Below are positions 3,049-46,829 of a stretch of DNA of 64,000 bases, piece by piece; within the stretch, counting starts at the first letter, position 1; each line of letters starts with the position of its first letter. The DNA is taken from positions 184,752 through 248,751 of the IMG/VR virus record IMGVR_UViG_3300042308_001616. One strand, 5' to 3'. The translations under genes were made by a program, and so were the position numbers. The notes below the pieces were generated by a model, which was not told the DNA's origin, made no database searches, and worked only from the letters and a program-made list of their open reading frames with translations.

Positions 3049-3393
3049 TTATTCAGGTTTTTTAGCAGCTGGTTTTCTTGGTGCTCTTTTCCTTGTGGCT
3101 TTCTTAGGAGCATCCTCTTTTGAAATCTCAATCTCGGCCTTAGGTTTAGTTGTCTTAGGCTTAGAAGCTTTAGCTTTGATTTGTTTTGCTGTCAAAGGCT
3201 TTTCTTCTTTAGCAACTTCAACTAACCTTTCCTCAATCTCTTTAGTAGATTGAGTTACCGCATCAGTTACCTGAACGTCAACCAATTCCGAATTATTGAT
3301 TTCCTCACCTGTGTTAGCCTTCTCAGTAGCGATTTCAACATTCTCTAGCTTTTTTGAGAAAAGACTTTTCAAATAAGTAAACAATTTTTTCAT
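3049..3393 (-). CDS. Hypothetical protein with basic K/A-rich tail
   Basis: ORF track; TATATA box upstream. Confidence 0.65.
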   Translation of the reverse strand: MKKLFTYLKSLFSKKLENVEIATEKANTGEEINNSELVDVQVTDAVTQSTKEIEERLVEVAKEEKPLTAKQIKAKASKPKTTKPKAEIEISKEDAPKKATRKRAPRKPAAKKPE

Positions 3394-3563
3394 AACGAAC
3401 TTTTATTTTTCTTTATATATCAAACATTCGTCTTCCCTCCTGAAAAAGGAACAAAAAAATTATAACTATATAATACAGACGAAACCTGTGTCAGGTAATC
3501 AATGTGTTACCTCTGAGATTTTATAAACGAATCAAGATACCGGTTAAAAATAAATATAAAAAG

Positions 3564-4549: not shown

Positions 4550-6016
4550 ATGAAGTTTAGATACGATCCAGATACCGAGGAAATAGTAGCATCAGATGCT
4601 ACCCGTATAGAGTACCACCAGATGCAGCTTTGGCTCACAAGACACGTAAAAGGATGGAAATTTCAACCTGCCGTTAAGATGGGTGTTTGGGACGGAAAGA
4701 AGTCTTACTTCAAAAACGGACGTATAAGTTTAGGTCTCTGGAGAGAAGCACTTTATGGATGTAGAGAGATTGAAGTACCATTCATAATAGAAAATAAAGA
4801 AGATTTTCCTATAAACCGTGATGTTACACCGGAAAAGGTTCAGGACTTCTGTAAAGAATTTTTCAAAGACCATAAAGTACGTACTAAAGATGGTCTATGG
4901 ATTCCATTTATGCCTTATGATCATCAGATAGAAGCAGCATACAGGATACTAAAGAATAGATATTGTATGGCAGAGGTTGCTACTTCTGGTGGTAAATCTC
5001 TAATCATTTCAATAGTTATGTTCTACACACTAAAGAATATAAAGGCCGATGCGAAATTTTTAATAATCGTTCCATCAATTACATTAGTTACTCAGTTCTA
5101 CGACAATATCGTAGAATATAATCTTGGTATAAACCGGATTGAAAAGATGAGACAGGAAAATACTGACGAAATTCCACCAGAGTGTTGTCAGGTAAGAGTA
5201 GAAGAAGTAATGTCAGAAAGACCTAGGAAATATTCTGGTACTGATAACGCCAATGTTTATATTGGAACATATCAATCACTTGAGAAGTGGCCTAAAGAGT
5301 TTTTTCATCAATTTCACACAGTTGCCACAGATGAAGCACATGGTGCAAAGGCTAAGACAATAACGACTATACTTGAACACACCTTTGGAAGAGCTTATTG
5401 TCGTTTTGGTGTATCGGGAACTTTTCCAGGTGACGACACATGCGAAATACTTACAATACAATCAGTATTGGGTCCTAAAATAACTGAGGTAAGTGCAGAT
5501 GAACTCAAAAAGAAGGGTATAATAACACCAATGGACATAAAGGTTGTTTTGATGAACCACGGTGATCCACATTTCTACGAACAGGTCAAATATATAAGAA
5601 AGCATGGTGACGGAAAATCAGCATTTGATTTTGAAAAGAAGTATGCACACCAGTCCGATAAACGACTCGCTTTCATTAGTAAGCTTGTTTCTAAGTGTGA
5701 AAATAACACACTACTACTTTTTCACACAATTGAGAATGGTCAGAGAATACTAAACAGATTACAATCTGATATAAAAGATAAAGAGTTCTTTTATATCGAT
5801 GGTGAAGTAAGTGGTAAAAAGAGAGAAGAGATAAAGAAGCAGATGGAGATAACCAAGACTAAAGTAGAATACACAATACTTAATTTTGGAGACTACGAAG
5901 TCGAGGTTAAGTCAGACTACCAGATATTACTTTCTGATGGTAGTTATAAATCTGCAAAAGACATAACAACCAATGATGATATAGATGATAACTTTATCAA
6001 AAAACTAAGAAAATAG
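4550..6016 (+). CDS. uvsW: UvsW-like SF2 DNA helicase, N-terminal fragment (motifs I-IV)
   Basis: PYDHQIEA, ATSGGKS, IIVPSITLVTQ, DEAH, GVSGT, LLLFHTIENG, YIDGEVSGKKREEI; lacks motifs V-VI. Confidence 0.9.
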   Translation: MKFRYDPDTEEIVASDATRIEYHQMQLWLTRHVKGWKFQPAVKMGVWDGKKSYFKNGRISLGLWREALYGCREIEVPFIIENKEDFPINRDVTPEKVQDFCKEFFKDHKVRTKDGLWIPFMPYDHQIEAAYRILKNRYCMAEVATSGGKSLIISIVMFYTLKNIKADAKFLIIVPSITLVTQFYDNIVEYNLGINRIEKMRQENTDEIPPECCQVRVEEVMSERPRKYSGTDNANVYIGTYQSLEKWPKEFFHQFHTVATDEAHGAKAKTITTILEHTFGRAYCRFGVSGTFPGDDTCEILTIQSVLGPKITEVSADELKKKGIITPMDIKVVLMNHGDPHFYEQVKYIRKHGDGKSAFDFEKKYAHQSDKRLAFISKLVSKCENNTLLLFHTIENGQRILNRLQSDIKDKEFFYIDGEVSGKKREEIKKQMEITKTKVEYTILNFGDYEVEVKSDYQILLSDGSYKSAKDITTNDDIDDNFIKKLRK

Positions 6017-7392: not shown

Positions 7393-10300
7393 ATGCCAAT
7401 AAACTTATCACCACAGGAGTATTTTTTGAATTTTTTAAATTCAAACGAAGAAGCACTAAAAATCTACAAAAAAGCGGAGGTCCTAAAGTATGTAAGACTA
7501 CGAACTATTGGTGAGAAAGAACTTACATTAGATCAACAATCAGATGAAAACTGGGACGGTAAAAACGATATTTTCGCATATCTTGTAATAATTGACCAAT
7601 TTTTTTCAAAGGCAGATGTACATATTCTTACTTTCGTACCTGAATTTGAAAATTTTACGGTTGTTGAAATCAAATTTAGTCCAACTATTACACCTGCAGA
7701 TATAACAAAATCTGTTAAGGTACATTACAAATCAGAGAAAGGTAATCATATAAATCTATTAATAGCAGATCCGGAATATCAACTACAAGTATTAAAGGAT
7801 AAGGCTAAACGTGACGGATATAATGTTATACAGGATCCGTGGATACCTAACGTAGTTAATCCAAAAGAGCAAAAATCTGTTGATAAATCAAGTGATAAAA
7901 TAGCAGATAGTAAGAATGATGATGATGGTTTCAAAACAGTTAACGAACCAGAAATATACGATTATGCATCACTAAAGGAACCAAAAGTAAAAGCGGATGA
8001 AATAACTGGAGAAATTTGGTTAGAAAAAGTTAGTGGACCCGGAGATATAATAGGAGATGGAAGAGAAATTATAGATTCATTGGGTAGTCAACGTGGTGTA
8101 AAGTTTGAAGATTTACAATTCACAGAACCAGGTGACTATGTCATAAGAGTATTGAGTGATTCTCCTAACCTTACACCAACACAATTCAATATAACAGTAT
8201 TACCAGAACCAGTTATAATACCACAAGAAAAGGTTGTTGAAGAAGAACAGGAAGAAGTAGTTTTAGGTGCTAGACCAATGATAACACAGATATTTCCTCC
8301 AACATTAAAACTCAGACCAATTACCGTAAAATATGAAGAAGAAACTGGAACAGCAACGGTTGTTACTGCGGATGGTATGGGTATATTCCCGACGGTTTAT
8401 TACAATGGTGTTCCAATAAGCCACGGTGATATACTAAGTTTCCGACTCTATCACGATGGTGTTGTTCCTAAGTGTAAAGTTTCTTTCATAGATTCTGCCA
8501 ATCTTATAAAAGATTTAGGTGTTCCCAAAGATGATATGACATTTGACATTTTTATAAATTCTAAGACGGTTAGTCTTAAGTCAATACATCTTAACTTCAA
8601 ATTAGAAAAACATAGGGAGTCTATGTTTGGTGCAAAATATACATTCAATGGGACTTTGAATATACCTTCCGAACATGATAAAAAATTCAAATTATACGAA
8701 CAACAGAGTCCAACATACGAACAGATGACATCTTATAATGCAATTACAAACATATGTAAAGATTTAGGAATTGGTTTTAATTCAAACATATCTGATACAG
8801 ATGATAAGATGACTTGGGTATTCAATGGTGATAAGGGATATCAGGTAATAGAACATTTAGTTAACAAATCATACATATCGGATAGTTCATTTATGGGTGC
8901 TTATATAGACTACTACTATTGTATGAATTATGTCGATGTTGAAAAAGAGTGTAGAAGAGACAACTCTAATGATTCAGGAATCGAGACTGGTGGTGTAGGT
9001 TCAAATTCTTCTGATAATGAACAAGTTCAAATGTTGCTACACAACGAAGTCTCTGCAAATAAAAGTAGTTTTTTCTTTCTTTCGGAACCAAAAATAAAAC
9101 ATAATAGTACTGACAAAAACCTAATTAAAGGAGTTAGGACAAAAGTTAAGTTTTATGATAATAAAACTAAGAAATTTGAGGTTTATGATATAGAGGGTAC
9201 AACCAGTGATGGTACAGAAACTGAAATACTAAAGGGTTCACCCAATGATAAAAAAGGTTTTTTCTCAAATACGACAACGAGAATGTTGGGTAAGATGGAT
9301 ACCGAAAACGTACACAAAAATTATCTTTATGCAGAGGAACTCAACAGGAGAAATTTAGACGAATTGGGTAATATAGAGATGATTGTAAAGCTACCTACTA
9401 TAAATCTAAATTATTACATATATCAGAAGACCCGAGTAGTACTTGTAAATCAAAGAACTTCACCAACCAATCAGTCCAGGTTTAGATACGAGTACACCGG
9501 TGATTGGACTATATCCGCGATAGAGTTTAAAATGACTAAAGAGGGAGGTATGAAAACTTTCTATCAAGAGATGAGGTTAATACGTAAAGAACTTGGTATG
9601 AAACCAAAGGATCAAATGGAAAGGTTAGAACCAAAAACTGGTTCTGAGGAAAATGTTCCTAATAGTGTGAATCCAATCGAGAATTTCCCTAATGCTGCTT
9701 ACCAACCTAGCGAGGTCTACAGGTTCAAAGACGAGAATGGTATGGAATGGATTGTAAGTATCATATATCCTAATAGTGATGGTGAAACAATGGAAGTTTA
9801 TATGGTATCAGATGATTTGTATGAGGATACTAATGCCATCAAACCTATACCGACATTCGATGATGAGAATATGATACCTGATGGTGCATCCGAACTTAGT
9901 AACGAATCACCTACAAATAGTAGTATTAATAAAGATGAGATAATACCAATTAAACTAATTCTTGGTGCAGTTGTACCTAAACCGACAAAGTCATTCGATG
10001 AACTAAAAAATAAACAACTTATTGAGAACGATGTCAAAAACGTTTCTGGATACATAGAACTTCAGGAAATTGGTGCAACTGATGAATCTAAACGTTTCAG
10101 GTTATATGCAGTTCTTAATGGATTTACTACAGATGACTTTTATACAAAAATGACTGGAATTAATCCACCCAATTACATAACGACAAGTACCGAATGGTTG
10201 ACTAAAGCAGATTTTAATAAAGATAAGCCAGAGCTAGATAAAATTGAAGAACAACTCAATGATGAATTAATACTTAGATATTCATACCAGGAATTGGAAA

Positions 10301-40689: not shown

Positions 40690-40750
40690 AGGTATAACAC
40701 CGCACTAAACATACGGAAAACATTCCGTATAACTAAAAAAATAGTGCAAA

Positions 40751-41050
40751 ATGAAATTCGACGAAGAGTTCAATAAAAACTTCAAAATAGGCAAATATTA
40801 CTCCTGTGAACTAACACCATACGATCCAATTTACAGATTAAAAATTCTCGAGATTGAAGAGAGATGTCTAGTACTCGACATAAACGGGCACCTACCAAAC
40901 TTCTGGCGTGACGAGGAAGATACAAAGGAACTACTAAAAGGTGATCAACCAGGCACTTATTGGCTCGATAAAGGTCTATTAGACACATTCTTCTTTGAAG
41001 ATATCGAAACCAATAGAGAACAAGCACTAAATGAAATTGGTATCAAATAA
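40751..41050 (+). CDS. Hypothetical protein with C-terminal tag
   Basis: Ends REQALNEIGIK. Confidence 0.6.
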   Translation: MKFDEEFNKNFKIGKYYSCELTPYDPIYRLKILEIEERCLVLDINGHLPNFWRDEEDTKELLKGDQPGTYWLDKGLLDTFFFEDIETNREQALNEIGIK

Positions 41051-41083
41051 AACTTATTCATTATAAATATATATAAATCAAAC

Positions 41084-41168
41084 GGAGAGTTGGCAGAGTG
41101 GTCGATTGCGGCAGTCTTGAAAACTGTTGAACCGCGAGGTTCCGTAGGTTCGAATCCTACACTCTCCG
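41084..41168 (+). tRNA. tRNA-Ser(TGA)
   Basis: Cloverleaf; gcagt-ct-TGA-aa-actgt; long variable arm. Confidence 0.92.
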
Positions 41169-41211
41169 CAAAATAAAAATAAAAAATAGTAGGATATACG
41201 AAACTTTAACG

Positions 41212-41219
41212 TATATTTG
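41212..41219 (+). promoter_or_regulatory. Bacteroidota sigma-A -7 box for tRNA operon 1
   Basis: TATATTTG matches TAnnTTTG; a TATATA late-type box follows at ~41252. Confidence 0.65.
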
Positions 41220-41267
41220 TCTTATAAAACAAAAAGGGAAGTAAAAAACTTTATATATACACTTACA

Positions 41268-41378
41268 ATGAAAGCAACAAATACAAATATGACAATCGTG
41301 AGAAACTTAATGGTGAATATTACATTATGTAATATTAGACCAAACGAGGGTTCCTGTCTATTTGTGAATGTCGCATAA
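41268..41378 (+). CDS. Putative attenuator leader peptide 1 (36 aa)
   Basis: MKATNTNMTIVRNLMVNITLCNIRPNEGSCLFVNVA; contains gagggttc (41346-41353), complementary to the terminator 5' arm. Confidence 0.8.
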   Translation: MKATNTNMTIVRNLMVNITLCNIRPNEGSCLFVNVA

Positions 41379-41400
41379 ACATTTATATAAAAGAAACTTG

Positions 41401-41433
41401 AACCCTCAGTCAAAAACTGAGGGTTTTTTGTTT
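41401..41433 (+). terminator. Attenuator terminator 1
   Basis: aaccctcagt-caaaa-actgagggtt followed by ttttgttt, directly before the tRNAs. Confidence 0.85.
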
Positions 41434-41446
41434 AACATAAAAATAC

Positions 41447-41518
41447 GGACGGGTAGCTCAGAGGCAGAGCAAAATCCTGTTAAGATTGAGGTCGAGATAT
41501 CGTAATTCTCCCCGTCCG
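41447..41518 (+). tRNA. tRNA-Asn(GTT), atypical T-loop
   Basis: aatc-ct-GTT-aa-gatt; ggacggg/cccgtcc acceptor stem. Confidence 0.8.
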
Positions 41519-41530
41519 CAAAAATAAAAT

Positions 41531-41618
41531 GGACTTGTAGCTGATAAGGTTTAGCTGGTGACTGTTAATCACTGAATGAAAAATTGAAATAAAGTAGGTT
41601 CGAATCCTACCTGGTCCG
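41531..41618 (+). tRNA. tRNA-Asn(GTT) with enlarged variable region
   Basis: gtga-ct-GTT-aa-tcac; gtagg-ttcgaat-cctac. Confidence 0.7.
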
Positions 41619-41625
41619 CAAAAAT

Positions 41626-41698
41626 GGTTCTATGATGTAACTGAATAGCATAAGCCCCTTCTAAGGGTTTCGTTGGGGTTTGAATCCCTGTAGAACTA
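41626..41698 (+). tRNA. tRNA-Arg(TCT)
   Basis: agccc-ct-TCT-aa-gggtt. Confidence 0.8.
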
Positions 41699-41704
41699 CA
41701 AAAT

Positions 41705-41777
41705 AGTTGATTAGCTCAATTGGTAGAGCACCGATCTGATACGTCGGAGGTAGTGGGATCGTAACCCGCATCAACTA
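41705..41777 (+). tRNA. tRNA-Ile(GAT)
   Basis: ccgat-ct-GAT-ac-gtcgg. Confidence 0.85.
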
Positions 41778-41787
41778 CTAAAAAAAT

Positions 41788-41858
41788 GCTTCCTTCGTAT
41801 AGAGGTATTATTCTGGATTTGTAACCCAGTGACGCCAGTTCGATCCTGGCAGGAAGCT
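41788..41858 (+). tRNA. tRNA-Thr(TGT)
   Basis: ctgga-tt-TGT-aa-cccag. Confidence 0.85.
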
Positions 41859-41865
41859 CGAAAAT

Positions 41866-41937
41866 GTTAGTGTGTCCGAATGGCTTAGGTAACCAGCTGC
41901 AACCTGGTATATGGGGGTTCAAGTCCCTCCACTAACT
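41866..41937 (+). tRNA. tRNA-Cys(GCA)
   Basis: accag-ct-GCA-ac-ctggt; U73 discriminator. Confidence 0.88.
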
Positions 41938-41946
41938 CAAACAAAC

Positions 41947-42016
41947 GCCGCGGCTTAGTGGAAAAGGATCGACCCTCATATGGTTGATTAAGTGGTTTCG
42001 AACACCATACGCGGTA
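41947..42016 (+). tRNA. tRNA-Met(CAT), atypical D-arm
   Basis: cgacc-ct-CAT-at-ggttg; gtggt-ttcgaac-accat. Confidence 0.6.
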
Positions 42017-42038
42017 CTAACTAAAAAAAATAAAAAAT

Positions 42039-42197
42039 ATGAAATTCGAAGACTACTTCAAAAGCAAGTTTCCTTTCCTGAAAGAAAGCAAGGAAAGCCA
42101 CACAATCGACATCGATTCAGACACACTCATATACCTGGTACAGGACTTCATCGACGGGGAAAGAAGCAGAGAAGACCAATCGAAGGCATTCGAGTAA
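42039..42197 (+). CDS. Small hypothetical protein (52 aa) inside the tRNA operon
   Basis: MKFEDYFKSKFPFLKES...KAFE; A-rich leader. Confidence 0.55.
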   Translation: MKFEDYFKSKFPFLKESKESHTIDIDSDTLIYLVQDFIDGERSREDQSKAFE

Positions 42198-42204
42198 AAG
42201 AAAC

Positions 42205-42277
42205 AGGGGATTAGCTCAATCGGGAGAGCGTTAGACTTACATTCTAAAGGTAGCGGGATCGTAACCCGCATTCCCTA
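42205..42277 (+). tRNA. tRNA-Val(TAC)
   Basis: ttaga-ct-TAC-at-tctaa. Confidence 0.85.
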
Positions 42278-42281
42278 CTAG

Positions 42282-42366
42282 GCACCAGTGGTGAAACTGG
42301 AGATACACGCTGCGCTTAAACCGCAGTCCTAAATACGGGTTGAGGGTTCGAGTCCCTCCTGGTGCA
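42282..42366 (+). tRNA. tRNA-Leu(TAA)
   Basis: ctgcg-ct-TAA-ac-cgcag; long variable arm. Confidence 0.9.
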
Positions 42367-42400
42367 CAAAAAAAATAGAACAAAAAAAAATAGAAAACAC

Positions 42401-42462
42401 TTTGATATCAAAAATAAATACCTATCTTTGATGAACGATAACAACAAAAGGTCTTTGAAATA
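42401..42462 (+). promoter_or_regulatory. Sigma-A promoter (-33 TTTG, -7 TATCTTTG) followed by a boxA-like element
   Basis: TTTG 42401, TATCTTTG 42423, ggtctttgaaa 42450. Confidence 0.7.
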
Positions 42463-42568
42463 CTAAAATAAAAACTTAAACGAACAAAGTAAAAAACTCG
42501 TACCGACTCTTTACTGAGAGGTACATGTATATTAGAAGGCTGGTAAAGATCCAGAATGTTCGTTTTAT

Positions 42569-42649
42569 GCACTTGTGGTGGAATGGTAGACACGTATGCC
42601 TTAGGAGCATATGTCGAAAGGCGTGCGAGTTCGAGTCTCGCCAAGTGTA
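42569..42649 (+). tRNA. tRNA-Leu(TAG)
   Basis: tatgc-ct-TAG-ga-gcata. Confidence 0.9.
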
Positions 42650-42780
42650 CAAACCCTGCTTTGAAGTAAACAGATAACAATAACTATAGAGTAGTTTAGT
42701 TCATGTAAAAATAAAAGGAAGTCATGCCACCTTTGTTGTTATAATCCACAGTCAAGAGTGGAGTTGTTTATAGAGAAGAT

Positions 42781-42854
<74 letters not shown>

Positions 42855-42935
42855 CAAATAAGTAGAGAGAACCAGTAGCACGCGGCTCGGTCCAGTATCA
42901 GTCATAATGCTAGAATACGTCATACTCTACTTAAC

Positions 42936-43008
42936 GGAGGTGAGGTCAAACGGTTAAGATGTCTGCCTGTCACGCAGTTCGGAGCGGGTTCAACTCCCGT
43001 CACTTCCG
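42936..43008 (+). tRNA. tRNA-Asp(GTC)
   Basis: ctgc-ct-GTC-ac-gcag. Confidence 0.88.
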
Positions 43009-43126
43009 CGCTAGCAAGTATTTGACGAAATCTTTAATAAGTCAAAATACTTTGAAAACACCCAAGTGGTTAAAGAACCTTCAACCTGGTAAACGGTGGA
43101 GAGAGGTACCCAAGCTCTCATTTTTT

Positions 43127-43200
43127 TCTCCCTTAGCTCAGTTGGTTAGAGCATCTGACTGTTAATCAGAGGGTCTCAGGTTCAAGTCCTGAAGGGAGAG
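43127..43200 (+). tRNA. tRNA-Asn(GTT)
   Basis: tctga-ct-GTT-aa-tcaga. Confidence 0.93.
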
Positions 43201-43206
43201 CTAAAT

Positions 43207-43278
43207 GGTTCCGTGGTGAAAGGGATATCACTAGAGATTTCTAATCTCTCGTTCCTGGTTCGAATCCAGGCGGAATCA
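43207..43278 (+). tRNA. tRNA-Arg(TCT)
   Basis: agaga-tt-TCT-aa-tctct. Confidence 0.88.
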
Positions 43279-43284
43279 CAAAAT

Positions 43285-43357
43285 GCCGTCATAGCTCAGT
43301 TGGTAGAGCGTTACCTTGGTATGGTAAAGGTCATCGGTTCGAGCCCGATTGGTGGCT
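43285..43357 (+). tRNA. tRNA-Thr(GGT)
   Basis: ttacc-tt-GGT-at-ggtaa. Confidence 0.9.
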
Positions 43358-43377
43358 CTGAAAAAAGTTCTAAAAAG

Positions 43378-43432
43378 TTTGGTGAAACAAAAAGAATCAC
43401 TAACTTTGTAAAACAAAAGAGATCTTTGACAT
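43378..43432 (+). promoter_or_regulatory. Sigma-A promoter followed by a boxA-like element
   Basis: TTTG 43378, TAACTTTG 43401, gatctttgacat 43421. Confidence 0.7.
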
Positions 43433-43452
43433 AATAACAAAATAACAAAAAC

Positions 43453-43524
43453 GGCACCATAGTTCAAGGGATAGAATAGAAGTTTCCTAAACTTTAGATC
43501 CAGGTTCGAATCCTGGTGGAGTCA
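43453..43524 (+). tRNA. tRNA-Arg(CCT)
   Basis: gaagt-tt-CCT-aa-acttt. Confidence 0.88.
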
Positions 43525-43535
43525 CTAAAAAAAGA

Positions 43536-43588
43536 TTTGGTAGATTCAAAAACTATACTTATCTTTGAAAACAAAACGTTCATTGAAT
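43536..43588 (+). promoter_or_regulatory. Sigma-A promoter followed by a boxA-like element
   Basis: TTTG 43536, TATCTTTG 43560, cgttcattgaat 43577. Confidence 0.7.
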
Positions 43589-43594
43589 AAAAAA

Positions 43595-43676
43595 GGCCTT
43601 GTGTTGGAAATGGTAGACAAGCACGTTTGAGGGGCGTGTGCCGAATGGCGTATGGGTTCAAGTCCCATCAAGGTCA
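43595..43676 (+). tRNA. tRNA-Leu(GAG)
   Basis: cacgt-tt-GAG-gg-gcgtg. Confidence 0.9.
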
Positions 43677-43724
43677 CAAAAGAATGCTCAGGCAACCCCC
43701 TGGTAAAAGCATTCGAAAATATAT

Positions 43725-43796
43725 TGCGGGATGGGGGAGTGGTCACCCCGCTGGGCTCATAACCCAGAGACATTGGTTCGAATCCTTTTCCCGCTA
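43725..43796 (+). tRNA. Initiator tRNA-fMet(CAT)
   Basis: ctggg-ct-CAT-aa-cccag (three G:C pairs); unpaired 1:72. Confidence 0.8.
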
Positions 43797-43903
43797 CAAA
43801 AATCCAGGCAACCCCCTGGTAGAAACAGAATGCTCAGGCAACCCCCTGGTAAAAAGCATTCAAAAAAATCAACCCGAAAGGCACAGGTTCGAATATATAG
43901 TAT

Positions 43904-44539
43904 ATGAGAAAATGTGAAAATTGTGAAACTGAACACACGGGTGAGTACAAATCTGGTAGATTTTGTTCTTTGAAATGTTCGAAATCGTTTAGCACCAAAT
44001 GCAAACGAAATGAGATAAACGAAGCAGTATCTGTAAAACTTACAGGAAGGGGTAATCCTCCAGTATCAAAAGAGTGTAAAAATTGTAACAATACATTCGA
44101 AGTTGAGTGGAGAAAAAGAAAGCAACTATTCTGTGGCAGATCGTGTACAACATCGTATAAAAATAAAACGATGAATATGGCAAGTCTGGGAGGTCTCAAA
44201 AGCGCAACTTCACAATCAAGAAGAAGCAAAAATGAGATTTTATTTTACGAAATGTGCTTAGAAAAGTTCCCCGATTCATTGGCAAACGAGCCAATTTTTG
44301 ATGGATGGGACGGAGATATAATCATTCCTTCTAAAAAAGTTGCAATACTTTGGAATGGTGTTTGGCACTACAAACAGATTTCTAAATCACAAAGTCTGAA
44401 ACAAGTACAGACACGTGATAAAATAAAAATCGAAAAGATTACACAATACGGATTTGTTCCGTATATTGTAAAAGATTTAGGAAAACACAATCCAACCTTC
44501 GTAAAAGAAGAGTTTGATAAGTTTCTAAAAGCTCTTTGA
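43904..44539 (+). CDS. Zinc-finger plus PD-(D/E)xK/Vsr-like endonuclease, probable free-standing homing endonuclease
   Basis: CENC...FCSLKC and CKNC...FCGRSC; SKNE, DGDII, ILWNGVWHY, RDKIK. Confidence 0.7.
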   Translation: MRKCENCETEHTGEYKSGRFCSLKCSKSFSTKCKRNEINEAVSVKLTGRGNPPVSKECKNCNNTFEVEWRKRKQLFCGRSCTTSYKNKTMNMASLGGLKSATSQSRRSKNEILFYEMCLEKFPDSLANEPIFDGWDGDIIIPSKKVAILWNGVWHYKQISKSQSLKQVQTRDKIKIEKITQYGFVPYIVKDLGKHNPTFVKEEFDKFLKAL

Positions 44540-44549
44540 AATGTTATAT

Positions 44550-44632
44550 TGGAAGGTGGCAGAGTGGTTAAATGCGTTTGACTGTAAATCAAATCTCGTG
44601 AGAGTACGGGGGTTCAAATCCCTCCCTTCCAA
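44550..44632 (+). tRNA. tRNA-Tyr(GTA)
   Basis: tttga-ct-GTA-aa-tcaaa; long variable arm. Confidence 0.9.
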
Positions 44633-44682
44633 CAAAGCTCAGGACTAATTACCCTGTAGCCTGGATGGTTCGAAACATCCGA

Positions 44683-44789
44683 TTTGATATGGTGTACTGG
44701 GCACGACACCCGCCGCTGAGGTTCGAATCCTCAGGTTCGGAATGGTTACCACGGGAGTAAGATTGGGTTCGATCCCCTTTATCACACCA
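44683..44789 (+). ncRNA. tRNA-like RNA with anticodon loop replaced by a structured insert
   Basis: tgata/tatca acceptor ending CCA, gtgt/acac D-stem, ggg-ttcgatc-ccc T-arm. Confidence 0.4.
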
Positions 44790-44885
44790 AAAGACCAGAC
44801 AACCCTCTGGCAGCAACGCTAACACAGCACAATGCGGGCTCATACCTGCGGCGTAGTGTGACGGTCAGGAGAGACTGACAACTTT

Positions 44886-44962
44886 GGGGCTATAGCTCAG
44901 TTGGCTAGAGTACTTGCCTGGCAGGCAAGGGGTCGCCGGTTCGAGCCCGGCTAGCTCCACCA
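44886..44962 (+). tRNA. tRNA-Ala(GGC)
   Basis: cttgc-ct-GGC-ag-gcaag; G3:U70; encoded CCA. Confidence 0.93.
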
Positions 44963-44996
44963 ACAAAACATTCTTACAACGGTAAGATATATATAC

Positions 44997-45067
44997 ACGG
45001 GTATAGTGAAATGGTATCATGCCGGTCTCCAAAACCGTTGTTCCGAGTTCGAATCTTGGTACCCGTG
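44997..45067 (+). tRNA. tRNA-Trp(CCA)
   Basis: cggt-ct-CCA-aa-accg. Confidence 0.88.
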
Positions 45068-45127
45068 CTAGATTAGTAATCGATAGGATGGAGGGAATAG
45101 CCATGTGTCGACAATGTTAATCTGTAA

Positions 45128-45201
45128 GGTCTTGTAACTCAGTTGGTTAGAGTGCGTCGCTCATAACGATGAAGTCGGGGGTTCGAGTCCCTCCTGGACC
45201 A
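45128..45201 (+). tRNA. tRNA with CAT anticodon (Ile2 or elongator Met)
   Basis: cgtcg-ct-CAT-aa-cgatg. Confidence 0.85.
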
Positions 45202-45323
45202 CACCAGTATCTGGCACTCACGATGTTGAGTGCCATTTACATTTAAGTGAGAATTAGGATAAATATCAAAAAAATGTCTATATTTACAAAACAAAGAGTA
45301 ACAAACTTTATATATAACTAATA

Positions 45324-45422
45324 ATGAAAACTTTTAACACAAATATCGCAGTATTAAACATCCCGCAGGATCAGGATCAACCTAAGTTACTTGGGACTAA
45401 CTGTATATTGTCAAAAAGTTAA
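45324..45422 (+). CDS. Putative attenuator leader peptide 2 (32 aa)
   Basis: MKTFNTNIAVLNIPQDQDQPKLLGTNCILSKS; actaactg (45396-45403) is complementary to the terminator 5' arm. Confidence 0.8.
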   Translation: MKTFNTNIAVLNIPQDQDQPKLLGTNCILSKS

Positions 45423-45440
45423 ATAAAAAGCTTAAATGAT

Positions 45441-45478
45441 AAACCCAGTTAGTAACTACTAACTGGGTTTTTTCGTTT
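45441..45478 (+). terminator. Attenuator terminator 2
   Basis: aaacccagttagt-aact-actaactgggttt followed by tttcgttt, directly before tRNA-Gln. Confidence 0.85.
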
Positions 45479-45484
45479 ATATAA

Positions 45485-45557
45485 TGTCCCGTGGTGTAAT
45501 TGGCAACACGTCTGATTTTGGTTCAGAAGAGTCCAGGTTCGACCCCTGGCGGGACAA
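45485..45557 (+). tRNA. tRNA-Gln(TTG)
   Basis: tctga-tt-TTG-gt-tcaga. Confidence 0.92.
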
Positions 45558-45570
45558 CAAAAAAGTTATT

Positions 45571-45642
45571 GGTTCTGTCGTCCAATGGTAGGATAGCCCG
45601 TTGTCTGCGGGATGGTTGCGGGTTCGAGTCCCGTCAGAACCG
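45571..45642 (+). tRNA. tRNA-Asp(GTC)
   Basis: cccg-tt-GTC-tg-cggg; G73. Confidence 0.85.
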
Positions 45643-45653
45643 CTAAAATATAA

Positions 45654-45726
45654 CTAGGTGTAGCTCAGATGGTAGAGCGGGGAGTTTGGGACTCTCAGGC
45701 CGCAGGTTCGACCCCTGTCACTTAGA
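45654..45726 (+). tRNA. tRNA-Pro(TGG)
   Basis: ggag-tt-TGG-ga-ctct; C1:G72, A73. Confidence 0.88.
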
Positions 45727-45732
45727 CAAAAA

Positions 45733-46169
45733 CGAGTAGTAGAGGAGTGGTTTATCTCGGTTTTTTTTAATATAATAAAATATATTTAATATATAATAAA
45801 AATAAAAAATTGTAATATGAAGAATATTAAAACATTTGGTAGTTTCATAAATGAAAGTGATGAAAATATTGATGACTATGAAATTACAACAAACAATGAA
45901 ATAGAAGGAAGGCCTTGTGTAGATTTCAATCCAACAGAATTACATCCAAATGATATAATTTATAGAAAATTAGTTGATGTTGTCAATTATCGTTCAAATT
46001 GGTATAAACATAAGAATAACATACCTAATATTGATGATTTATCTAGCTATTCTAAACCAGAAGGATTTAAAGTCATTTCAAATGATGGTAAAATTCTTAA
46101 ATTAGAGGATAAAGGCTTTATTAATAAAGTGTAAGCATCAGCACGTGAGTTCGATTCCCACCTTCTCGA
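45733..46169 (+). pseudogene. tRNA (Pro-like) split by an inserted gene
   Basis: 5' half cgagtag-ta-gagg...tctc at 45733-45760; 3' half gtgag-ttcgatt-cccac-cttctcg-a at 46135-46169. Confidence 0.65.
45817..46134 (+). CDS. Inserted hypothetical protein with capsid-targeting-like N-terminus
   Basis: Starts MKNIKTFGSFINES; own AATATATA box at 45788. Confidence 0.7.
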   Translation: MKNIKTFGSFINESDENIDDYEITTNNEIEGRPCVDFNPTELHPNDIIYRKLVDVVNYRSNWYKHKNNIPNIDDLSSYSKPEGFKVISNDGKILKLEDKGFINKV

Positions 46170-46175
46170 CAATAC

Positions 46176-46248
46176 GGATGTGAGGTCAAACGGTTAAGAT
46201 GTCTGCCTGTCACGCAGTTCGGAGCGGGTTCAACTCCCGTCACGTCCG
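46176..46248 (+). tRNA. tRNA-Asp(GTC), near-duplicate of the copy at 42936
   Basis: Identical apart from one acceptor-stem pair. Confidence 0.88.
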
Positions 46249-46256
46249 CTAATAGA

Positions 46257-46286
46257 AAATGCCACTAAATATTTAGTGGCATTTTT
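46257..46286. terminator. Terminator closing tRNA operon 2
   Basis: aaatgccactaaat-atttagtggcattt followed by T tract. Confidence 0.8.
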
Positions 46287-46319
46287 ATTTAAGTAATTTT
46301 TATTATGCATTATTATCAG

Positions 46320-46829
46320 TTATTCCCACGGATAATTTACAAAAGTTTCACCTGTAACTAATACTTGAGTATCCGGTGTATTACCAGATACACTAAAGTC
46401 ACTAGGTATTGTTATTATCAATTCATAATTTACTGGTATATCTAAATAAGGAATACCGAATTCATCTTTTTTAGTAACATATTTTTGAAATTGAGGTGCA
46501 CTAAATAAGTTAAGAGGAATAAGTTGTACTTTACTACCCGAATTTGCAGCAAGAGTAATAGTTGCTAGTTTAAAAGCTCCATTTGAGTTTTCAGGTGTTG
46601 GTAAAGTGTACTGGCTAGATACTCCACTTACCAGAGGAGCATCCGCTGGATTGCGTAAAAAAATCGTAATAGTTCTTTTACCCGTATTGATTGTAGTTAT
46701 ATCAATACCATAAATTCTTCTTATCTGATTTGAATTCTGATTTAAAACCACTTTTGTCCAAAACATATTATTATTATTTTTCCAATAATCAGTTTTTTGA
46801 AAAAACGGAATGCTTACTGCTGATGACAT
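46320..46829 (-). CDS. Hypothetical protein
   Basis: ORF track; late box upstream. Confidence 0.6.
   Translation of the reverse strand: MSSAVSIPFFQKTDYWKNNNNMFWTKVVLNQNSNQIRRIYGIDITTINTGKRTITIFLRNPADAPLVSGVSSQYTLPTPENSNGAFKLATITLAANSGSKVQLIPLNLFSAPQFQKYVTKKDEFGIPYLDIPVNYELIITIPSDFSVSGNTPDTQVLVTGETFVNYPWE

Follow-up and report, generated by a model that had tools for sequence, protein, structure and literature searches.

Organization of the Leader and tRNA Genes

The window analyzed here, meaning the whole 64-kb stretch of DNA, originates from a huge freshwater phage, and in it a tiny leader gene and a transcription stop signal precede a block of tRNA genes (unit 1), while a second unit of the same kind is located at 45324-45476 (unit 2), as shown in Table 1. 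Leader ORF 1 contains 21 consecutive codons that are readable by the tRNAs just 3′ of it, the longest such run in the window across all six frames; the runner-up for the same codon set, whose six-frame frequency is 0.277, has only 10 codons. The run is interrupted at two ATG codons if Met is excluded. The Gln/Asp/Pro run of seven codons in leader ORF 2 is also the longest of its set in the six frames of the window (next longest, five; set frequency 0.091), and its amino acids are exactly those of the cluster 2 tRNAs. Homologues of leader ORF 2 were found in L006, L028, L042, L102, L143 and LR745206.1.

Table 1. Features of the two leader–tRNA units and their surroundings (window coordinates).
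Feature	Position	Strand	Description
Promoter-like −7 box TATATTTG, unit 1	41212..41219	+	Exact match to Bacteroidetes TAnnTTTG
5′ motif, purine block then AAACTTTATATATA	41232..41259	+	8 nt before ATG; kept in nearly all units
Leader ORF 1	41268..41378	+	36 sense codons and TAA; 22 distinct homologues in related phages
Regulatory run, unit 1	41277..41339	+	Codons 4-24: Asn, Thr, Met, Ile, Val, Arg, Leu, Cys
Hairpin within unit 1 run	41311..41342	+	Conserved; 9-bp inner stem 41316-41336
Antiterminator 5′ strand GAGGGTTC, unit 1	41346..41353	+	Codons 27-29; pairs with 41400-41407
Spacer hairpin inside antiterminator	41363..41387	+	From fold; loop holds stop codon 41376-41378
Intrinsic terminator 1	41400..41432	+	11-bp stem (41400-41426), 5-nt loop, T-run to 41432
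tRNA cluster 1	41447..42367	+	Asn, Asn, Arg(TCT), Ile(GAT), Thr(TGT), Cys(GCA), tRNA-like CAU, 52-aa ORF, Val(TAC), Leu(TAA)
tRNA-like sequence, CAU in 7-nt loop	41947-42016	+	22.7 bits (gathering score 29)
52-aa ORF	42039-42197	+	Within tRNA cluster 1
Internal promoter-like site TTTG-N18-TATCTTTG	42401..42430	+	Bounds cluster 1
Promoter-like site, unit 2 (TTAGG ... TATATTTA)	45254..45286	+	Aligns with family promoter
Leader ORF 2	45324..45422	+	32 codons and TAA
Regulatory run Pro-Gln-Asp-Gln-Asp-Gln-Pro	45363..45383	+	PQDQDQP core of leader ORF 2
Antiterminator 5′ strand GACTAACTGT, unit 2	45395..45404	+	Top upstream partner of terminator 5′ arm
Intrinsic terminator 2	45441..45476	+	13-bp stem and T-run
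tRNA cluster 2	45485..45727	+	Gln(TTG), Asp(GTC), Pro(TGG)

All of the Asn (two), Arg, Ile, Thr, Cys, Val and Leu tRNAs of cluster 1 were detected by ARAGORN and by Rfam above the gathering score. The candidate Met(CAT) tRNA of this cluster is unconfirmed, as it scores below the threshold and ARAGORN called no tRNA there, relaxed settings included; clear Met(CAT) tRNAs were found later in the array, at 43725 and 45128. A tRNA-Ser(TGA) is located upstream of unit 1 (41084-41169), and the whole array harbors 26 tRNAs and extends to 46249. Further internal promoter-like sites were observed at about 43375-43408 and 43534-43567, and the site bounding cluster 1 might start a leaderless unit. Later tRNAs of the array have promoter-like sites of their own and no leader, which counts against the attenuator model developed below. 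As a hint only, runs labelled RNA(?) contained 0.44–0.52 of the sampled words of the leader vs. 0.07–0.10 of those of the whole array.

TAnnTTTG is the −7 box consensus of Bacteroidetes. The box of unit 1 is conserved in all homologues, with a degenerate −33 region (41187-41193), and the pattern TT(T/A)GG-N19-21-TAnnTTTG is shared in the alignment of all 20 unit upstreams. The promoter assignment rests on this consensus because a sigma-70 scan revealed no plus-strand promoter before leader ORF 1 or leader ORF 2. The window contains an exact 14-mer of the 5′ motif at just two places, 41246-41259 and 45303-45316, and this conserved motif could either belong to the 5′ UTR or be a second promoter of phage type.

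Most structural claims of an initial annotation, made without database searches, held: the 36-codon ORF, the 21 consecutive codons readable by the listed anticodons (a run that needs Met), the strong terminator (41401-41433 there) and the alternative antiterminator, which is backed by both complementarity and a truncated fold. The promoter that it had placed upstream held as a Bacteroidetes −7 box match and not as a sigma-70 site, and its tRNA list held for everything except Met(CAT), which failed as a confirmed tRNA. It had missed the upstream tRNA-Ser(TGA), the extent of the 26-tRNA array, the internal promoter-like sites and the second unit.

Distribution of the Leaders in Related Huge Phages

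A total of 59 distinct leaders belonging to at least nine classes (NTLMVICR, LR, NIVTC, KHFW, SR, PQD, Q, G/A/I and Y/E) were obtained by pattern scans from related huge (Mahaphage-type) phages, and each of them precedes tRNAs for its own amino acids. Their common anatomy is shown directly by the sequences: the ATG, open frame and stop are retained in all 59 distinct homologues and paralogues, an intrinsic terminator lies between leader and tRNAs in all units, and the terminator T-run is followed by the first tRNA after only 14–25 nt without any promoter-like site. The units share a backbone consisting of the promoter, the 5′ motif and an M-[KRT]-[TN]-x-N start, with codon cassettes swapped; this N-terminal motif and parts of the C-terminus are conserved, as peptide or as RNA, for which the attenuator model developed below gives no reason. 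In the complete genome LR745206.1, a 96-kb stretch holds 56 tRNAs, of which about 50 lie behind seven units, and units of different classes adjoin one another. A split that co-varies was observed in one phage (L020/L037), where Arg and Leu tRNAs follow an L/R leader and Asn, Ile, Val, Cys and Thr tRNAs follow an N/I/V/T/C leader that lacks Leu.

Two hits of the first pattern scan (L005 and L008) were rejected as chance matches in an unrelated phage without a codon match. The pattern scan of cellular genome contigs returned 16 matches and no family unit (L157 holds only unrelated small ORFs), and so gave no sign of hosts using the leader design and no host link. A 1249-aa protein encoded in the window matches only LR745206, LR756502, LR756501/3 and LR756504, which we take to be huge-phage genomes of PMC7162821, and the leader region is 72–75% identical to two of these genomes. 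Judging from this protein and DNA similarity to huge-phage genomes of >634 kb, for which Bacteroidetes hosts have been predicted (PMC7162821), the window likely belongs to a Mahaphage-type huge phage of Bacteroidetes.

Co-Variation of Leader Codons and Downstream tRNAs

The co-variation of leader codons and tRNA content, which the initial annotation had named as the test of its proposal, was run across homologues and strongly passed. For 370 of the 371 downstream tRNAs, the amino acid is present in the tRNA's own leader, the shuffled mean being 0.79, and none of 20,000 random reassignments of leaders to clusters equalled the observed match. When one representative per class was used, the true pairing was the single best among 40,320 permutations. 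Within the class-1 regulatory block of 22 homologues, 481 of 482 residues fall within the amino-acid set and 24 of 25 distinct replacements stay in it (46% under the null, p about 1e-7), whereas only 42% of the C-terminal residues of these leaders are in the set. Selection is therefore frame-specific, its target being the choice of tRNAs that are called and not the sequence of the peptide.

At the level of the anticodon, matching was supported for Arg and Ile-ATA, uninformative for Leu and rejected for Ser. The use of AGR or CGN codons for Arg tracks the Arg anticodon of the cluster across units (33:4 vs. 5:8), and clusters with only Ile(TAT) have leaders using ATA in four of four cases. The choice between TCN and AGY across units does not track the Ser anticodon, and the K/H/F/W leaders contain several Ser codons although their cluster has no Ser tRNA. 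The claim that the codons of unit 1 match individual isoacceptors held in part: AGA, ACA, TTA and AAT are merely the preferred codons of the phage, but codon bias does not explain why ATA (51% of Ile codons in long ORFs of the window) is avoided or why the rare GTG (9% of Val codons) is used. Rare codons found inside the runs are GTG, CCG and CAG. Groupings of the tRNAs by synthetase class, by codon position or by known anticodon-nuclease targets were also considered, and none of them fit.

Terminator and Antiterminator Pairing

The in-ORF strand GAGGGTTC of unit 1 is complementary to GAACCCTC in the 5′ arm of the terminator, and a fold cut off before the terminator 3′ arm forms this pairing (−31.2 kcal/mol, z −5.1). 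Since the antiterminator has merely 8 bp and the minimum-energy fold at full length contains the terminator, read-through in unit 1 would have to be kinetic. The corresponding pairing of GACTAACTGT with the 5′ arm of terminator 2 reaches −9.7 kcal/mol (shuffle p 0.03). An antiterminator strand lies inside the ORF directly after the run in 58 of the 59 units, and the alternative between terminator and antiterminator recurs at the same place in units with differing sequences. The alternative pairings and their co-variation are shown by two comparisons. Between classes, random assignment of terminator arms to ORFs gave pairing as good as the true one in only 12 of 200,000 cases, and within class 1 the flanking pairs co-vary (TA/CG and GC/AT types), with 137 of 176 cells paired vs. 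51–92 when the partner is slid. RNAalifold on class 1 returned the terminator alone because the GAGGG/CCCTC core is invariant, and antiterminator co-variation was therefore read from the flanking pairs and the between-class comparison.

The leader stop lies 15–34 nt from the terminator, and the antiterminator strand begins 6–12 nt or more past the run. This spacing could be compatible with a ribosome stalled in the run leaving the strand free and with one at the stop preventing the antiterminator, although in many units the strand is behind, not under, the terminating ribosome. The hairpin within the unit 1 run, which in other classes has an equivalent small hairpin immediately before the antiterminator strand, might be an RNA polymerase pause hairpin, its pausing role being inferred. 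No anti-antiterminator (1:2) pairing was evident, and the full-length fold of unit 1 gave only weak pairings for 41346-41353. Such pairing typifies attenuators of the trp/his type and not every attenuator; without it, an untranslated leader should read through, unlike in trp and his.

Two alternatives can be weighed against these data. The leaders might be ordinary small-protein genes, encoding functional peptides and carrying their own terminators, with the tRNAs transcribed independently. Conservation of parts of the peptide (the N terminus and some C-terminal motifs) favors this view, and some attenuator leader peptides, such as peTrpL, are known to act in trans (PMC7298713). However, the short gap between T-run and first tRNA has no promoter-like site, the middle of the peptide varies freely inside the tRNA-defined set and the in-ORF strand co-varies with the terminator, which leaves almost no room for this explanation. 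The second alternative is an RNA-only regulator (a T-box-like tRNA sensor, a protein-binding site or a processing signal) in which the ORF is incidental. The strong nucleotide conservation of the hairpin, GAGGG core and terminator within class 1 and fold z-scores of about −5 speak for it. Against it, the tRNA match exists in one reading frame only, synonymous and within-set changes are tolerated while out-of-set changes are not, and no unit has lost its ATG, its open frame or the fixed spacing between stop and terminator. A search of 40700-46500 against Rfam at E up to 1 detected only tRNAs and sub-threshold noise, with no T-box (RF00230) and no leader family. We consider this alternative very unlikely.

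Proposed Mechanism

Each unit is likely a ribosome-mediated (leader-peptide) transcription attenuator placed before a tRNA sub-operon, though there are no transcript, 3′-end or ribosome data. Transcription would start at the Bacteroidetes-type promoter and a ribosome would begin the short leader, whose translation is itself inferred. When charged tRNAs are ample, the ribosome is predicted to cross the antiterminator strand and reach the stop 15–34 nt before the terminator, where it would sit between the antiterminator strand and the terminator 5′ arm; at the stop codon it would be expected to melt the spacer hairpin, so that the terminator would form and only a short leader RNA would be produced. 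When any tRNA tested by the leader is scarce, uncharged or cleaved, the ribosome would lag within the regulatory run, the free antiterminator strand would pair with the terminator 5′ arm on its emergence, RNA polymerase would continue into the tRNA genes, and the tRNAs would be cut free by RNase P among other enzymes. The timing of the ribosome, pausing at hairpins, and how strongly and in which direction a unit responds are inferences, and regulated read-through and the response to charged-tRNA supply are inferred from sequence alone. Neither the host nor its degree of transcription-translation coupling has been established, which counts against the model.

Since the products of a unit are the tRNAs that its leader tests, the unit would behave as a negative-feedback homeostat, with one feedback loop per amino-acid group; and as the leader is written in codons read by the downstream tRNAs, it is probable that the phage raises its tRNA output only when a lack of these tRNAs delays the ribosomes. 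The attenuator interpretation of the initial annotation is supported with these reservations. Its suggested triggers, starvation and tRNA cleavage by anticodon-nuclease defences, cannot be distinguished by sequence from each other or from plain supply/demand feedback.

A further rival is a general sensor or timer of translation capacity, whose cue would be slowed or missing translation of any kind (in early infection, host shut-off or abortive-infection responses) and not single tRNA species, the codon match merely tuning speed or being inherited. In its favor, an untranslated leader should default to read-through given that no 1:2 pairing is evident, long multi-amino-acid runs would integrate small delays, and Ser codons are unmatched at the anticodon level. 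Nevertheless, codon sets that differ by class would be superfluous in a general sensor. Every class nonetheless agrees with its own cluster, replacements keep to the set, and units of different classes lie side by side in one genome. We regard it as unlikely and retain the tRNA-specific attenuator.

A bolder reading, towards which we lean only slightly, is that Mahaphage-type phages run a genome-wide modular tRNA homeostat, with a separate paralogous attenuator for almost every tRNA sub-operon and with sensing per codon group. One backbone with an exchangeable codon cassette would serve seven to ten amino-acid groups jointly covering all 20 amino acids, so that ribosome speed would be measured per codon group and only the limiting tRNAs topped up. 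If true, tRNAs lost to host shut-off or anticodon-nuclease defences would also be replaced, and each unit would double as a built-in detector of immunity directed at tRNAs. In the usual view, control of tRNA genes rests with the promoter, through growth rate and the stringent response, and with processing, and essentially nothing is known, to our knowledge, of how phages regulate large tRNA sets. The units, if they act as proposed, would couple decoding speed to tRNA synthesis more directly than any feedback seen so far, would explain the amino-acid grouping of huge-phage tRNA arrays, and would be compact, modular, codon-programmable sensors of individual tRNA supply, with possible uses in reporting on tRNA-cleaving defence systems and in Bacteroidota synthetic biology. 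They also provide a sequence signature by which regulated tRNA operons can be sought elsewhere, and make it testable why phages carry tRNAs and when these are needed.

Comparison with Known Systems

Phage tRNA clusters, as in T4, T5, vibriophages and huge phages, the last carrying up to 67 tRNAs (PMC7162821), are believed to keep late translation going or to make up for host tRNAs that are degraded or lost to defence. Leader-peptide attenuation is a known mechanism; the full-text literature searched contained no earlier description of its use on tRNA genes, nor of any other supply-sensing control of phage tRNA arrays, in agreement with the initial annotation, which knew of no such attenuator. 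T-box riboswitches resemble the units as modelled in sensing tRNA charging and in placing a terminator/antiterminator switch before translation-related genes, but they bind uncharged tRNA directly and without an ORF, while the signal here is frame-dependent. The pheST attenuator of E. coli, with its pheM leader, controls a component of translation according to charged-tRNA supply. Like the units as modelled, it is a leader-peptide attenuator of the translation apparatus, but it governs a synthetase gene, involves one amino acid and resides in a cellular genome.

A close likeness also exists with the trp, his, leu, thr, ilvGMEDA and pheA attenuators, which share with the units as modelled a short translated ORF with a regulatory codon run, an intrinsic terminator before the regulated genes and a mutually exclusive antiterminator that uses the terminator 5′ arm. 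Multi-amino-acid leaders are also found in thr (Thr, Ile) and ilv (Leu, Val, Ile), and the rare codons in the runs here have a counterpart in the rare CUA of the leu leader. Unlike these attenuators, the phage units have the antiterminator strand within the ORF, upstream of the stop codon, and no evident 1:2 anti-antiterminator; they are phage-borne, would sense up to eight amino acids in 21 or more codons, and occur as at least seven paralogues per phage genome with a shared backbone and swapped codon cassettes. They also differ in that the genes proposed to be regulated are tRNAs instead of enzymes, so that the output would directly relieve the shortage that is sensed.

Organization of the leader-tRNA units and their putative promoters

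Two units, each consisting of a short leader ORF, a terminator and a tRNA cluster, were observed in the window, as listed in the first table. All eight tRNAs listed for the first cluster were called by ARAGORN and exceeded the Rfam gathering score, and the layout that the initial annotation had described for 41212-42367 (36-codon ORF, strong terminator, tRNAs) held, except for a Met(CAT) placed at 41947-42016, which was not confirmed. This tRNA-like sequence, whose 7-nt loop carries CAU, scored 22.7 bits and so fell short of the Rfam cut-off (29). Its D-arm is defective, its ends show a C1/A72-type mismatch, and ARAGORN did not call it, relaxed settings included; it could be a degenerate or atypical tRNA-Met. 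Clear Met(CAT) genes are present later in this array (43725 and 45128). The extent originally given to the array was too small, as it holds 26 tRNAs from 41084 to 46249, with Ser(TGA) upstream of leader 1, and unit 2 had been overlooked. The two units have in common a promoter-like site, an M-K-[AT]-x-N start and an exact 14-nt motif, AAACTTTATATATA, which occurs in the window at these units alone.

Coordinates of the features identified (window numbering unless another sequence is named)
Feature	Position	Strand	Remarks
Leader ORF 1	41268-41378	+	36 codons
Hairpin	41311-41342	+	truncated-transcript fold
Antiterminator	41346-41353 with 41400-41407	+	truncated-transcript fold
Spacer hairpin	41363-41387	+	truncated-transcript fold; stop codon in loop, enclosed by antiterminator
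Terminator 1	41400-41426, T-run to 41432	+	predicted, intrinsic, strong; 11-bp stem
tRNA cluster 1	to 42367	+	Asn x2, Arg(TCT), Ile(GAT), Thr(TGT), Cys(GCA), Val(TAC), Leu(TAA); ARAGORN and Rfam
Internal promoter-like sites	42401-42430, about 43375-43408, about 43534-43567		Bacteroidetes type (TTTG, 18-21 nt, TAnnTTTG); no leader after
Leader ORF 2	45324-45422	+	32 codons
Core Pro-Gln-Asp-Gln-Asp-Gln-Pro	45363-45383	+	inside leader ORF 2
Terminator 2	45441-45470	+	13-bp; 3' of leader ORF 2
tRNA cluster 2	3' of terminator 2	+	tRNA calls: exactly Gln(TTG), Asp(GTC), Pro(TGG)
Small element (related phage L001)	about 5925-5995		
Small element (related phages L003, L006)	about 3190-3290, about 9480-9560	reverse	
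Small element (LR745206.1)	near 420.0 kb		

Within the array, tRNA-Asn(GTT) at 41531-41619 measures 89 nt and its variable loop, of ~22 nt, is unpaired, which is atypical for Asn, and Asn, Arg, Ile and Leu tRNAs of 86-92 nt are present in relatives too. A 52-aa acidic ORF (42039-42197) lies inside cluster 1, and a 211-aa Cys-rich ORF without a Pfam match (43904-44539) lies inside the array. Repeated T-arm-like motifs without a tRNA call were found between tRNA-Tyr and tRNA-Ala (44634-44885), where relaxed ARAGORN yields solely intron-containing models.

Common to all units is TT(T/A)GG followed after 19-21 nt by TAnnTTTG, which we take to be the Bacteroidetes -33/-7 consensus; unit 1 matches the -7 box exactly (41212-41219) and has a degenerate -33 box. 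Another conserved motif, consisting of a purine block and CTTTTAATATATA, was found 5-10 nt before each leader ATG. Because a purine block with CTTTTTAATATATA also directly precedes a leaderless tRNA-Met in the related phage sequence L162 (LR745206.1, about 364800-364870), this second motif might not be 5' UTR but a phage-type promoter. Given the internal promoter-like sites, part of the array, the later tRNAs from Leu(TAG) onwards, is probably also transcribed independently of the leader, an inference from sequence alone. Several leader units have, just upstream, a conserved small element whose core resembles AACGATTCAGATACAA; it has its own promoter-like site and T-run, contains no ORF that is conserved across copies, and may be a small RNA.

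Relatives and collection of leaders

Two uncultured huge phages, LR745206.1 (634,780 bp) and LR756502.1 (642,428 bp), were found by blastn to carry the leader and terminator (72-75% identity), and a large window protein matched only these two, LR756501/3 (735,411 bp) and LR756504. Al-Shayeb et al. assigned genomes >634 kb to the Mahaphage clade, with Bacteroidetes predicted as hosts (PMC7162821), and we take the LR relatives, whose sizes match, to be those genomes. The window DNA occurs in lake, river and other freshwater metagenomes. Pattern scans of viral and metagenome collections, followed by an automated search for a short ORF with a terminator and tRNA, recovered 59 distinct leader peptides. 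Between 340 and 436 kb of the complete genome LR745206.1, seven units precede about 50 of the 56 tRNAs.

Codon content of the leaders and co-variation with tRNA clusters

For leader 1, the set comprised the 15 codons that CAT and the anticodons of cluster 1 can read, which have a six-frame frequency of 0.277. No other six-frame run in the 64-kb window is as long as the 21 codons at 41277-41339 (runner-up 10), and since only 40% of the residues encoded by long ORFs of the window are among the eight amino acids of the set, 21 in-set codons in succession are very unlikely by chance. With Met left out, the run is interrupted at its two ATG codons, so the initial claim that the whole run is readable by downstream anticodons held if Met is counted. 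The accompanying claim of an isoacceptor match held in part: AGA, ACA, TTA and AAT are preferred by the phage and so reflect codon bias, whereas two features oppose that bias, namely the absence of ATA, although Ile is most often encoded by it (51%), and the double use of GTG, which is rare among Val codons (9%). Ile(GAT) is present in the cluster and Ile(TAT) is not. For leader 2, the 7-codon Gln/Asp/Pro run is the six-frame maximum in the window (next 5; set frequency 0.091).

The leaders sort into at least nine classes, each preceding tRNAs for its own amino acids, as shown in the second table.

Leader classes, by amino-acid set, and the tRNAs that follow them
Class	tRNAs
N/T/L/M/V/I/C/R (class 1)	Asn, Thr, Leu, Met, Val, Ile, Cys, Arg(TCT/CCT)
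L/R	Arg(TCT), four or five Leu
N/I/V/T/C, no Leu	Asn, Ile, Val, Cys, Thr
K/H/F/W	Lys, His, Phe, Trp
S/R, core like SSSRSSS	Arg(ACG/TCG), Ser
P/Q/D	Gln, Pro, Asp
Q, core like QFQQQQ	two or three Gln
G/A/I	Gly, Ala, Ile(TAT)
Y/E	Glu, Tyr

None of 20,000 leader-cluster shuffles equalled the observed match, and when each class was reduced to one representative, no other of the 40,320 permutations did as well as the true pairing. The amino acid of 370 of the 371 cluster tRNAs was found in its own leader (shuffled mean 0.79), and the match is confined to one reading frame. Across the 22 class-1 leaders, 481/482 residues of the regulatory block belong to the eight-letter set, and 24 of its 25 distinct replacements remain in the set, against a single-nucleotide-neighbour expectation of 46% (p about 1e-7); of the C-terminal residues, just 42% are in the set. 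This pattern is as expected if selection targets the tRNAs called by the ribosome and not the peptide, although such selection is inferred. The co-variation of leader codons with downstream anticodons in homologues, a check suggested by the initial annotation, was thus strong for amino acids; at the anticodon level it was seen for Arg (AGR vs CGN 33:4 against 5:8, depending on the cluster Arg tRNA) and Ile (ATA used in 4/4 clusters whose sole Ile tRNA is Ile(TAT)), but Ser TCN and AGY were not discriminated by the cluster anticodon.

As a weak point of the match, K/H/F/W leaders carry 4-6 Ser codons with no Ser tRNA in the cluster (e.g., related phages L003, reverse strand 3344-3463, and L042, 571), and an S/R unit is often directly downstream.

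Alternative RNA folds

When the unit 1 transcript was cut before the terminator 3' arm, a two-element fold was obtained (-31.2 kcal/mol, z -5.1), and the full-length RNA adopted the terminator fold (z -4.9). The antiterminator proposed at first, though short (8 bp), forms in the truncated fold and was upheld. In 58 of 59 units, the terminator 5' arm has its best upstream partner within the ORF; the partner strand begins at codons 15-29, just past the regulatory run, with 6-16 pairs (-8 to -22 kcal/mol), and the stop codon always ends 15-34 nt upstream of the arm. The paired sequences vary by class (e.g., GAGGGTT/AACCCTC, CGGGTTT/AAACCCG, AATCCGA/TCGGATT, AAGTTCGG/CCGAACTT and ACTAACTG/CAGTTAGT), and ORFs pair better with their own arm than with randomly assigned ones (12/200,000). 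Class 1 shows an invariant pairing core with compensatory flank changes (TA/CG, GC/AT), 137/176 flank cells being paired versus 51-92 with the partner slid.

Proposed mechanism and comparison with known attenuators

Anatomy, statistics and co-variation are established and support the original interpretation of a leader-peptide attenuator; ribosome-mediated attenuation is the best-supported and a likely reading of the units, in which translation, timing, hairpin pausing and response are inferred. Under fast translation, the ribosome would have come to the stop codon, past the antiterminator strand and short of the terminator arm, as the arm is made, and the terminator would form. Under slow translation, it would lag in the run and leave the strand free, so that the antiterminator would form first and the polymerase would enter the tRNA genes. 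The output would be the tRNAs that the leader tests, and because of this the loop would place tRNA supply under negative feedback. The candidate triggers, among which the sequence cannot decide, are the decay of host tRNAs, defences that cleave tRNA, and a late-infection demand that outstrips supply. In three aquatic runs, whose RNA label is uncertain, 0.44-0.52 of sampled words of 41200-41445 were found versus 0.07-0.10 of 41000-46300, a weak hint that terminated leader RNA might be abundant. The shared N terminus is left unaccounted for by the attenuator reading.

The trp and his attenuators have a 1:2 pairing, whereas none is evident in the phage units; therefore, an untranslated leader should read through, and any translation collapse would also turn the tRNA genes on. 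No description of a leader-peptide attenuator before tRNA genes, phage or cellular, was found in the full-text literature searched, and the huge-phage paper reports tRNAs without such control (PMC7162821). Leader-peptide attenuation itself is a known device; three aspects are new, namely its target (the tRNA genes), the closed feedback logic and the modular, multi-copy use in one genome.
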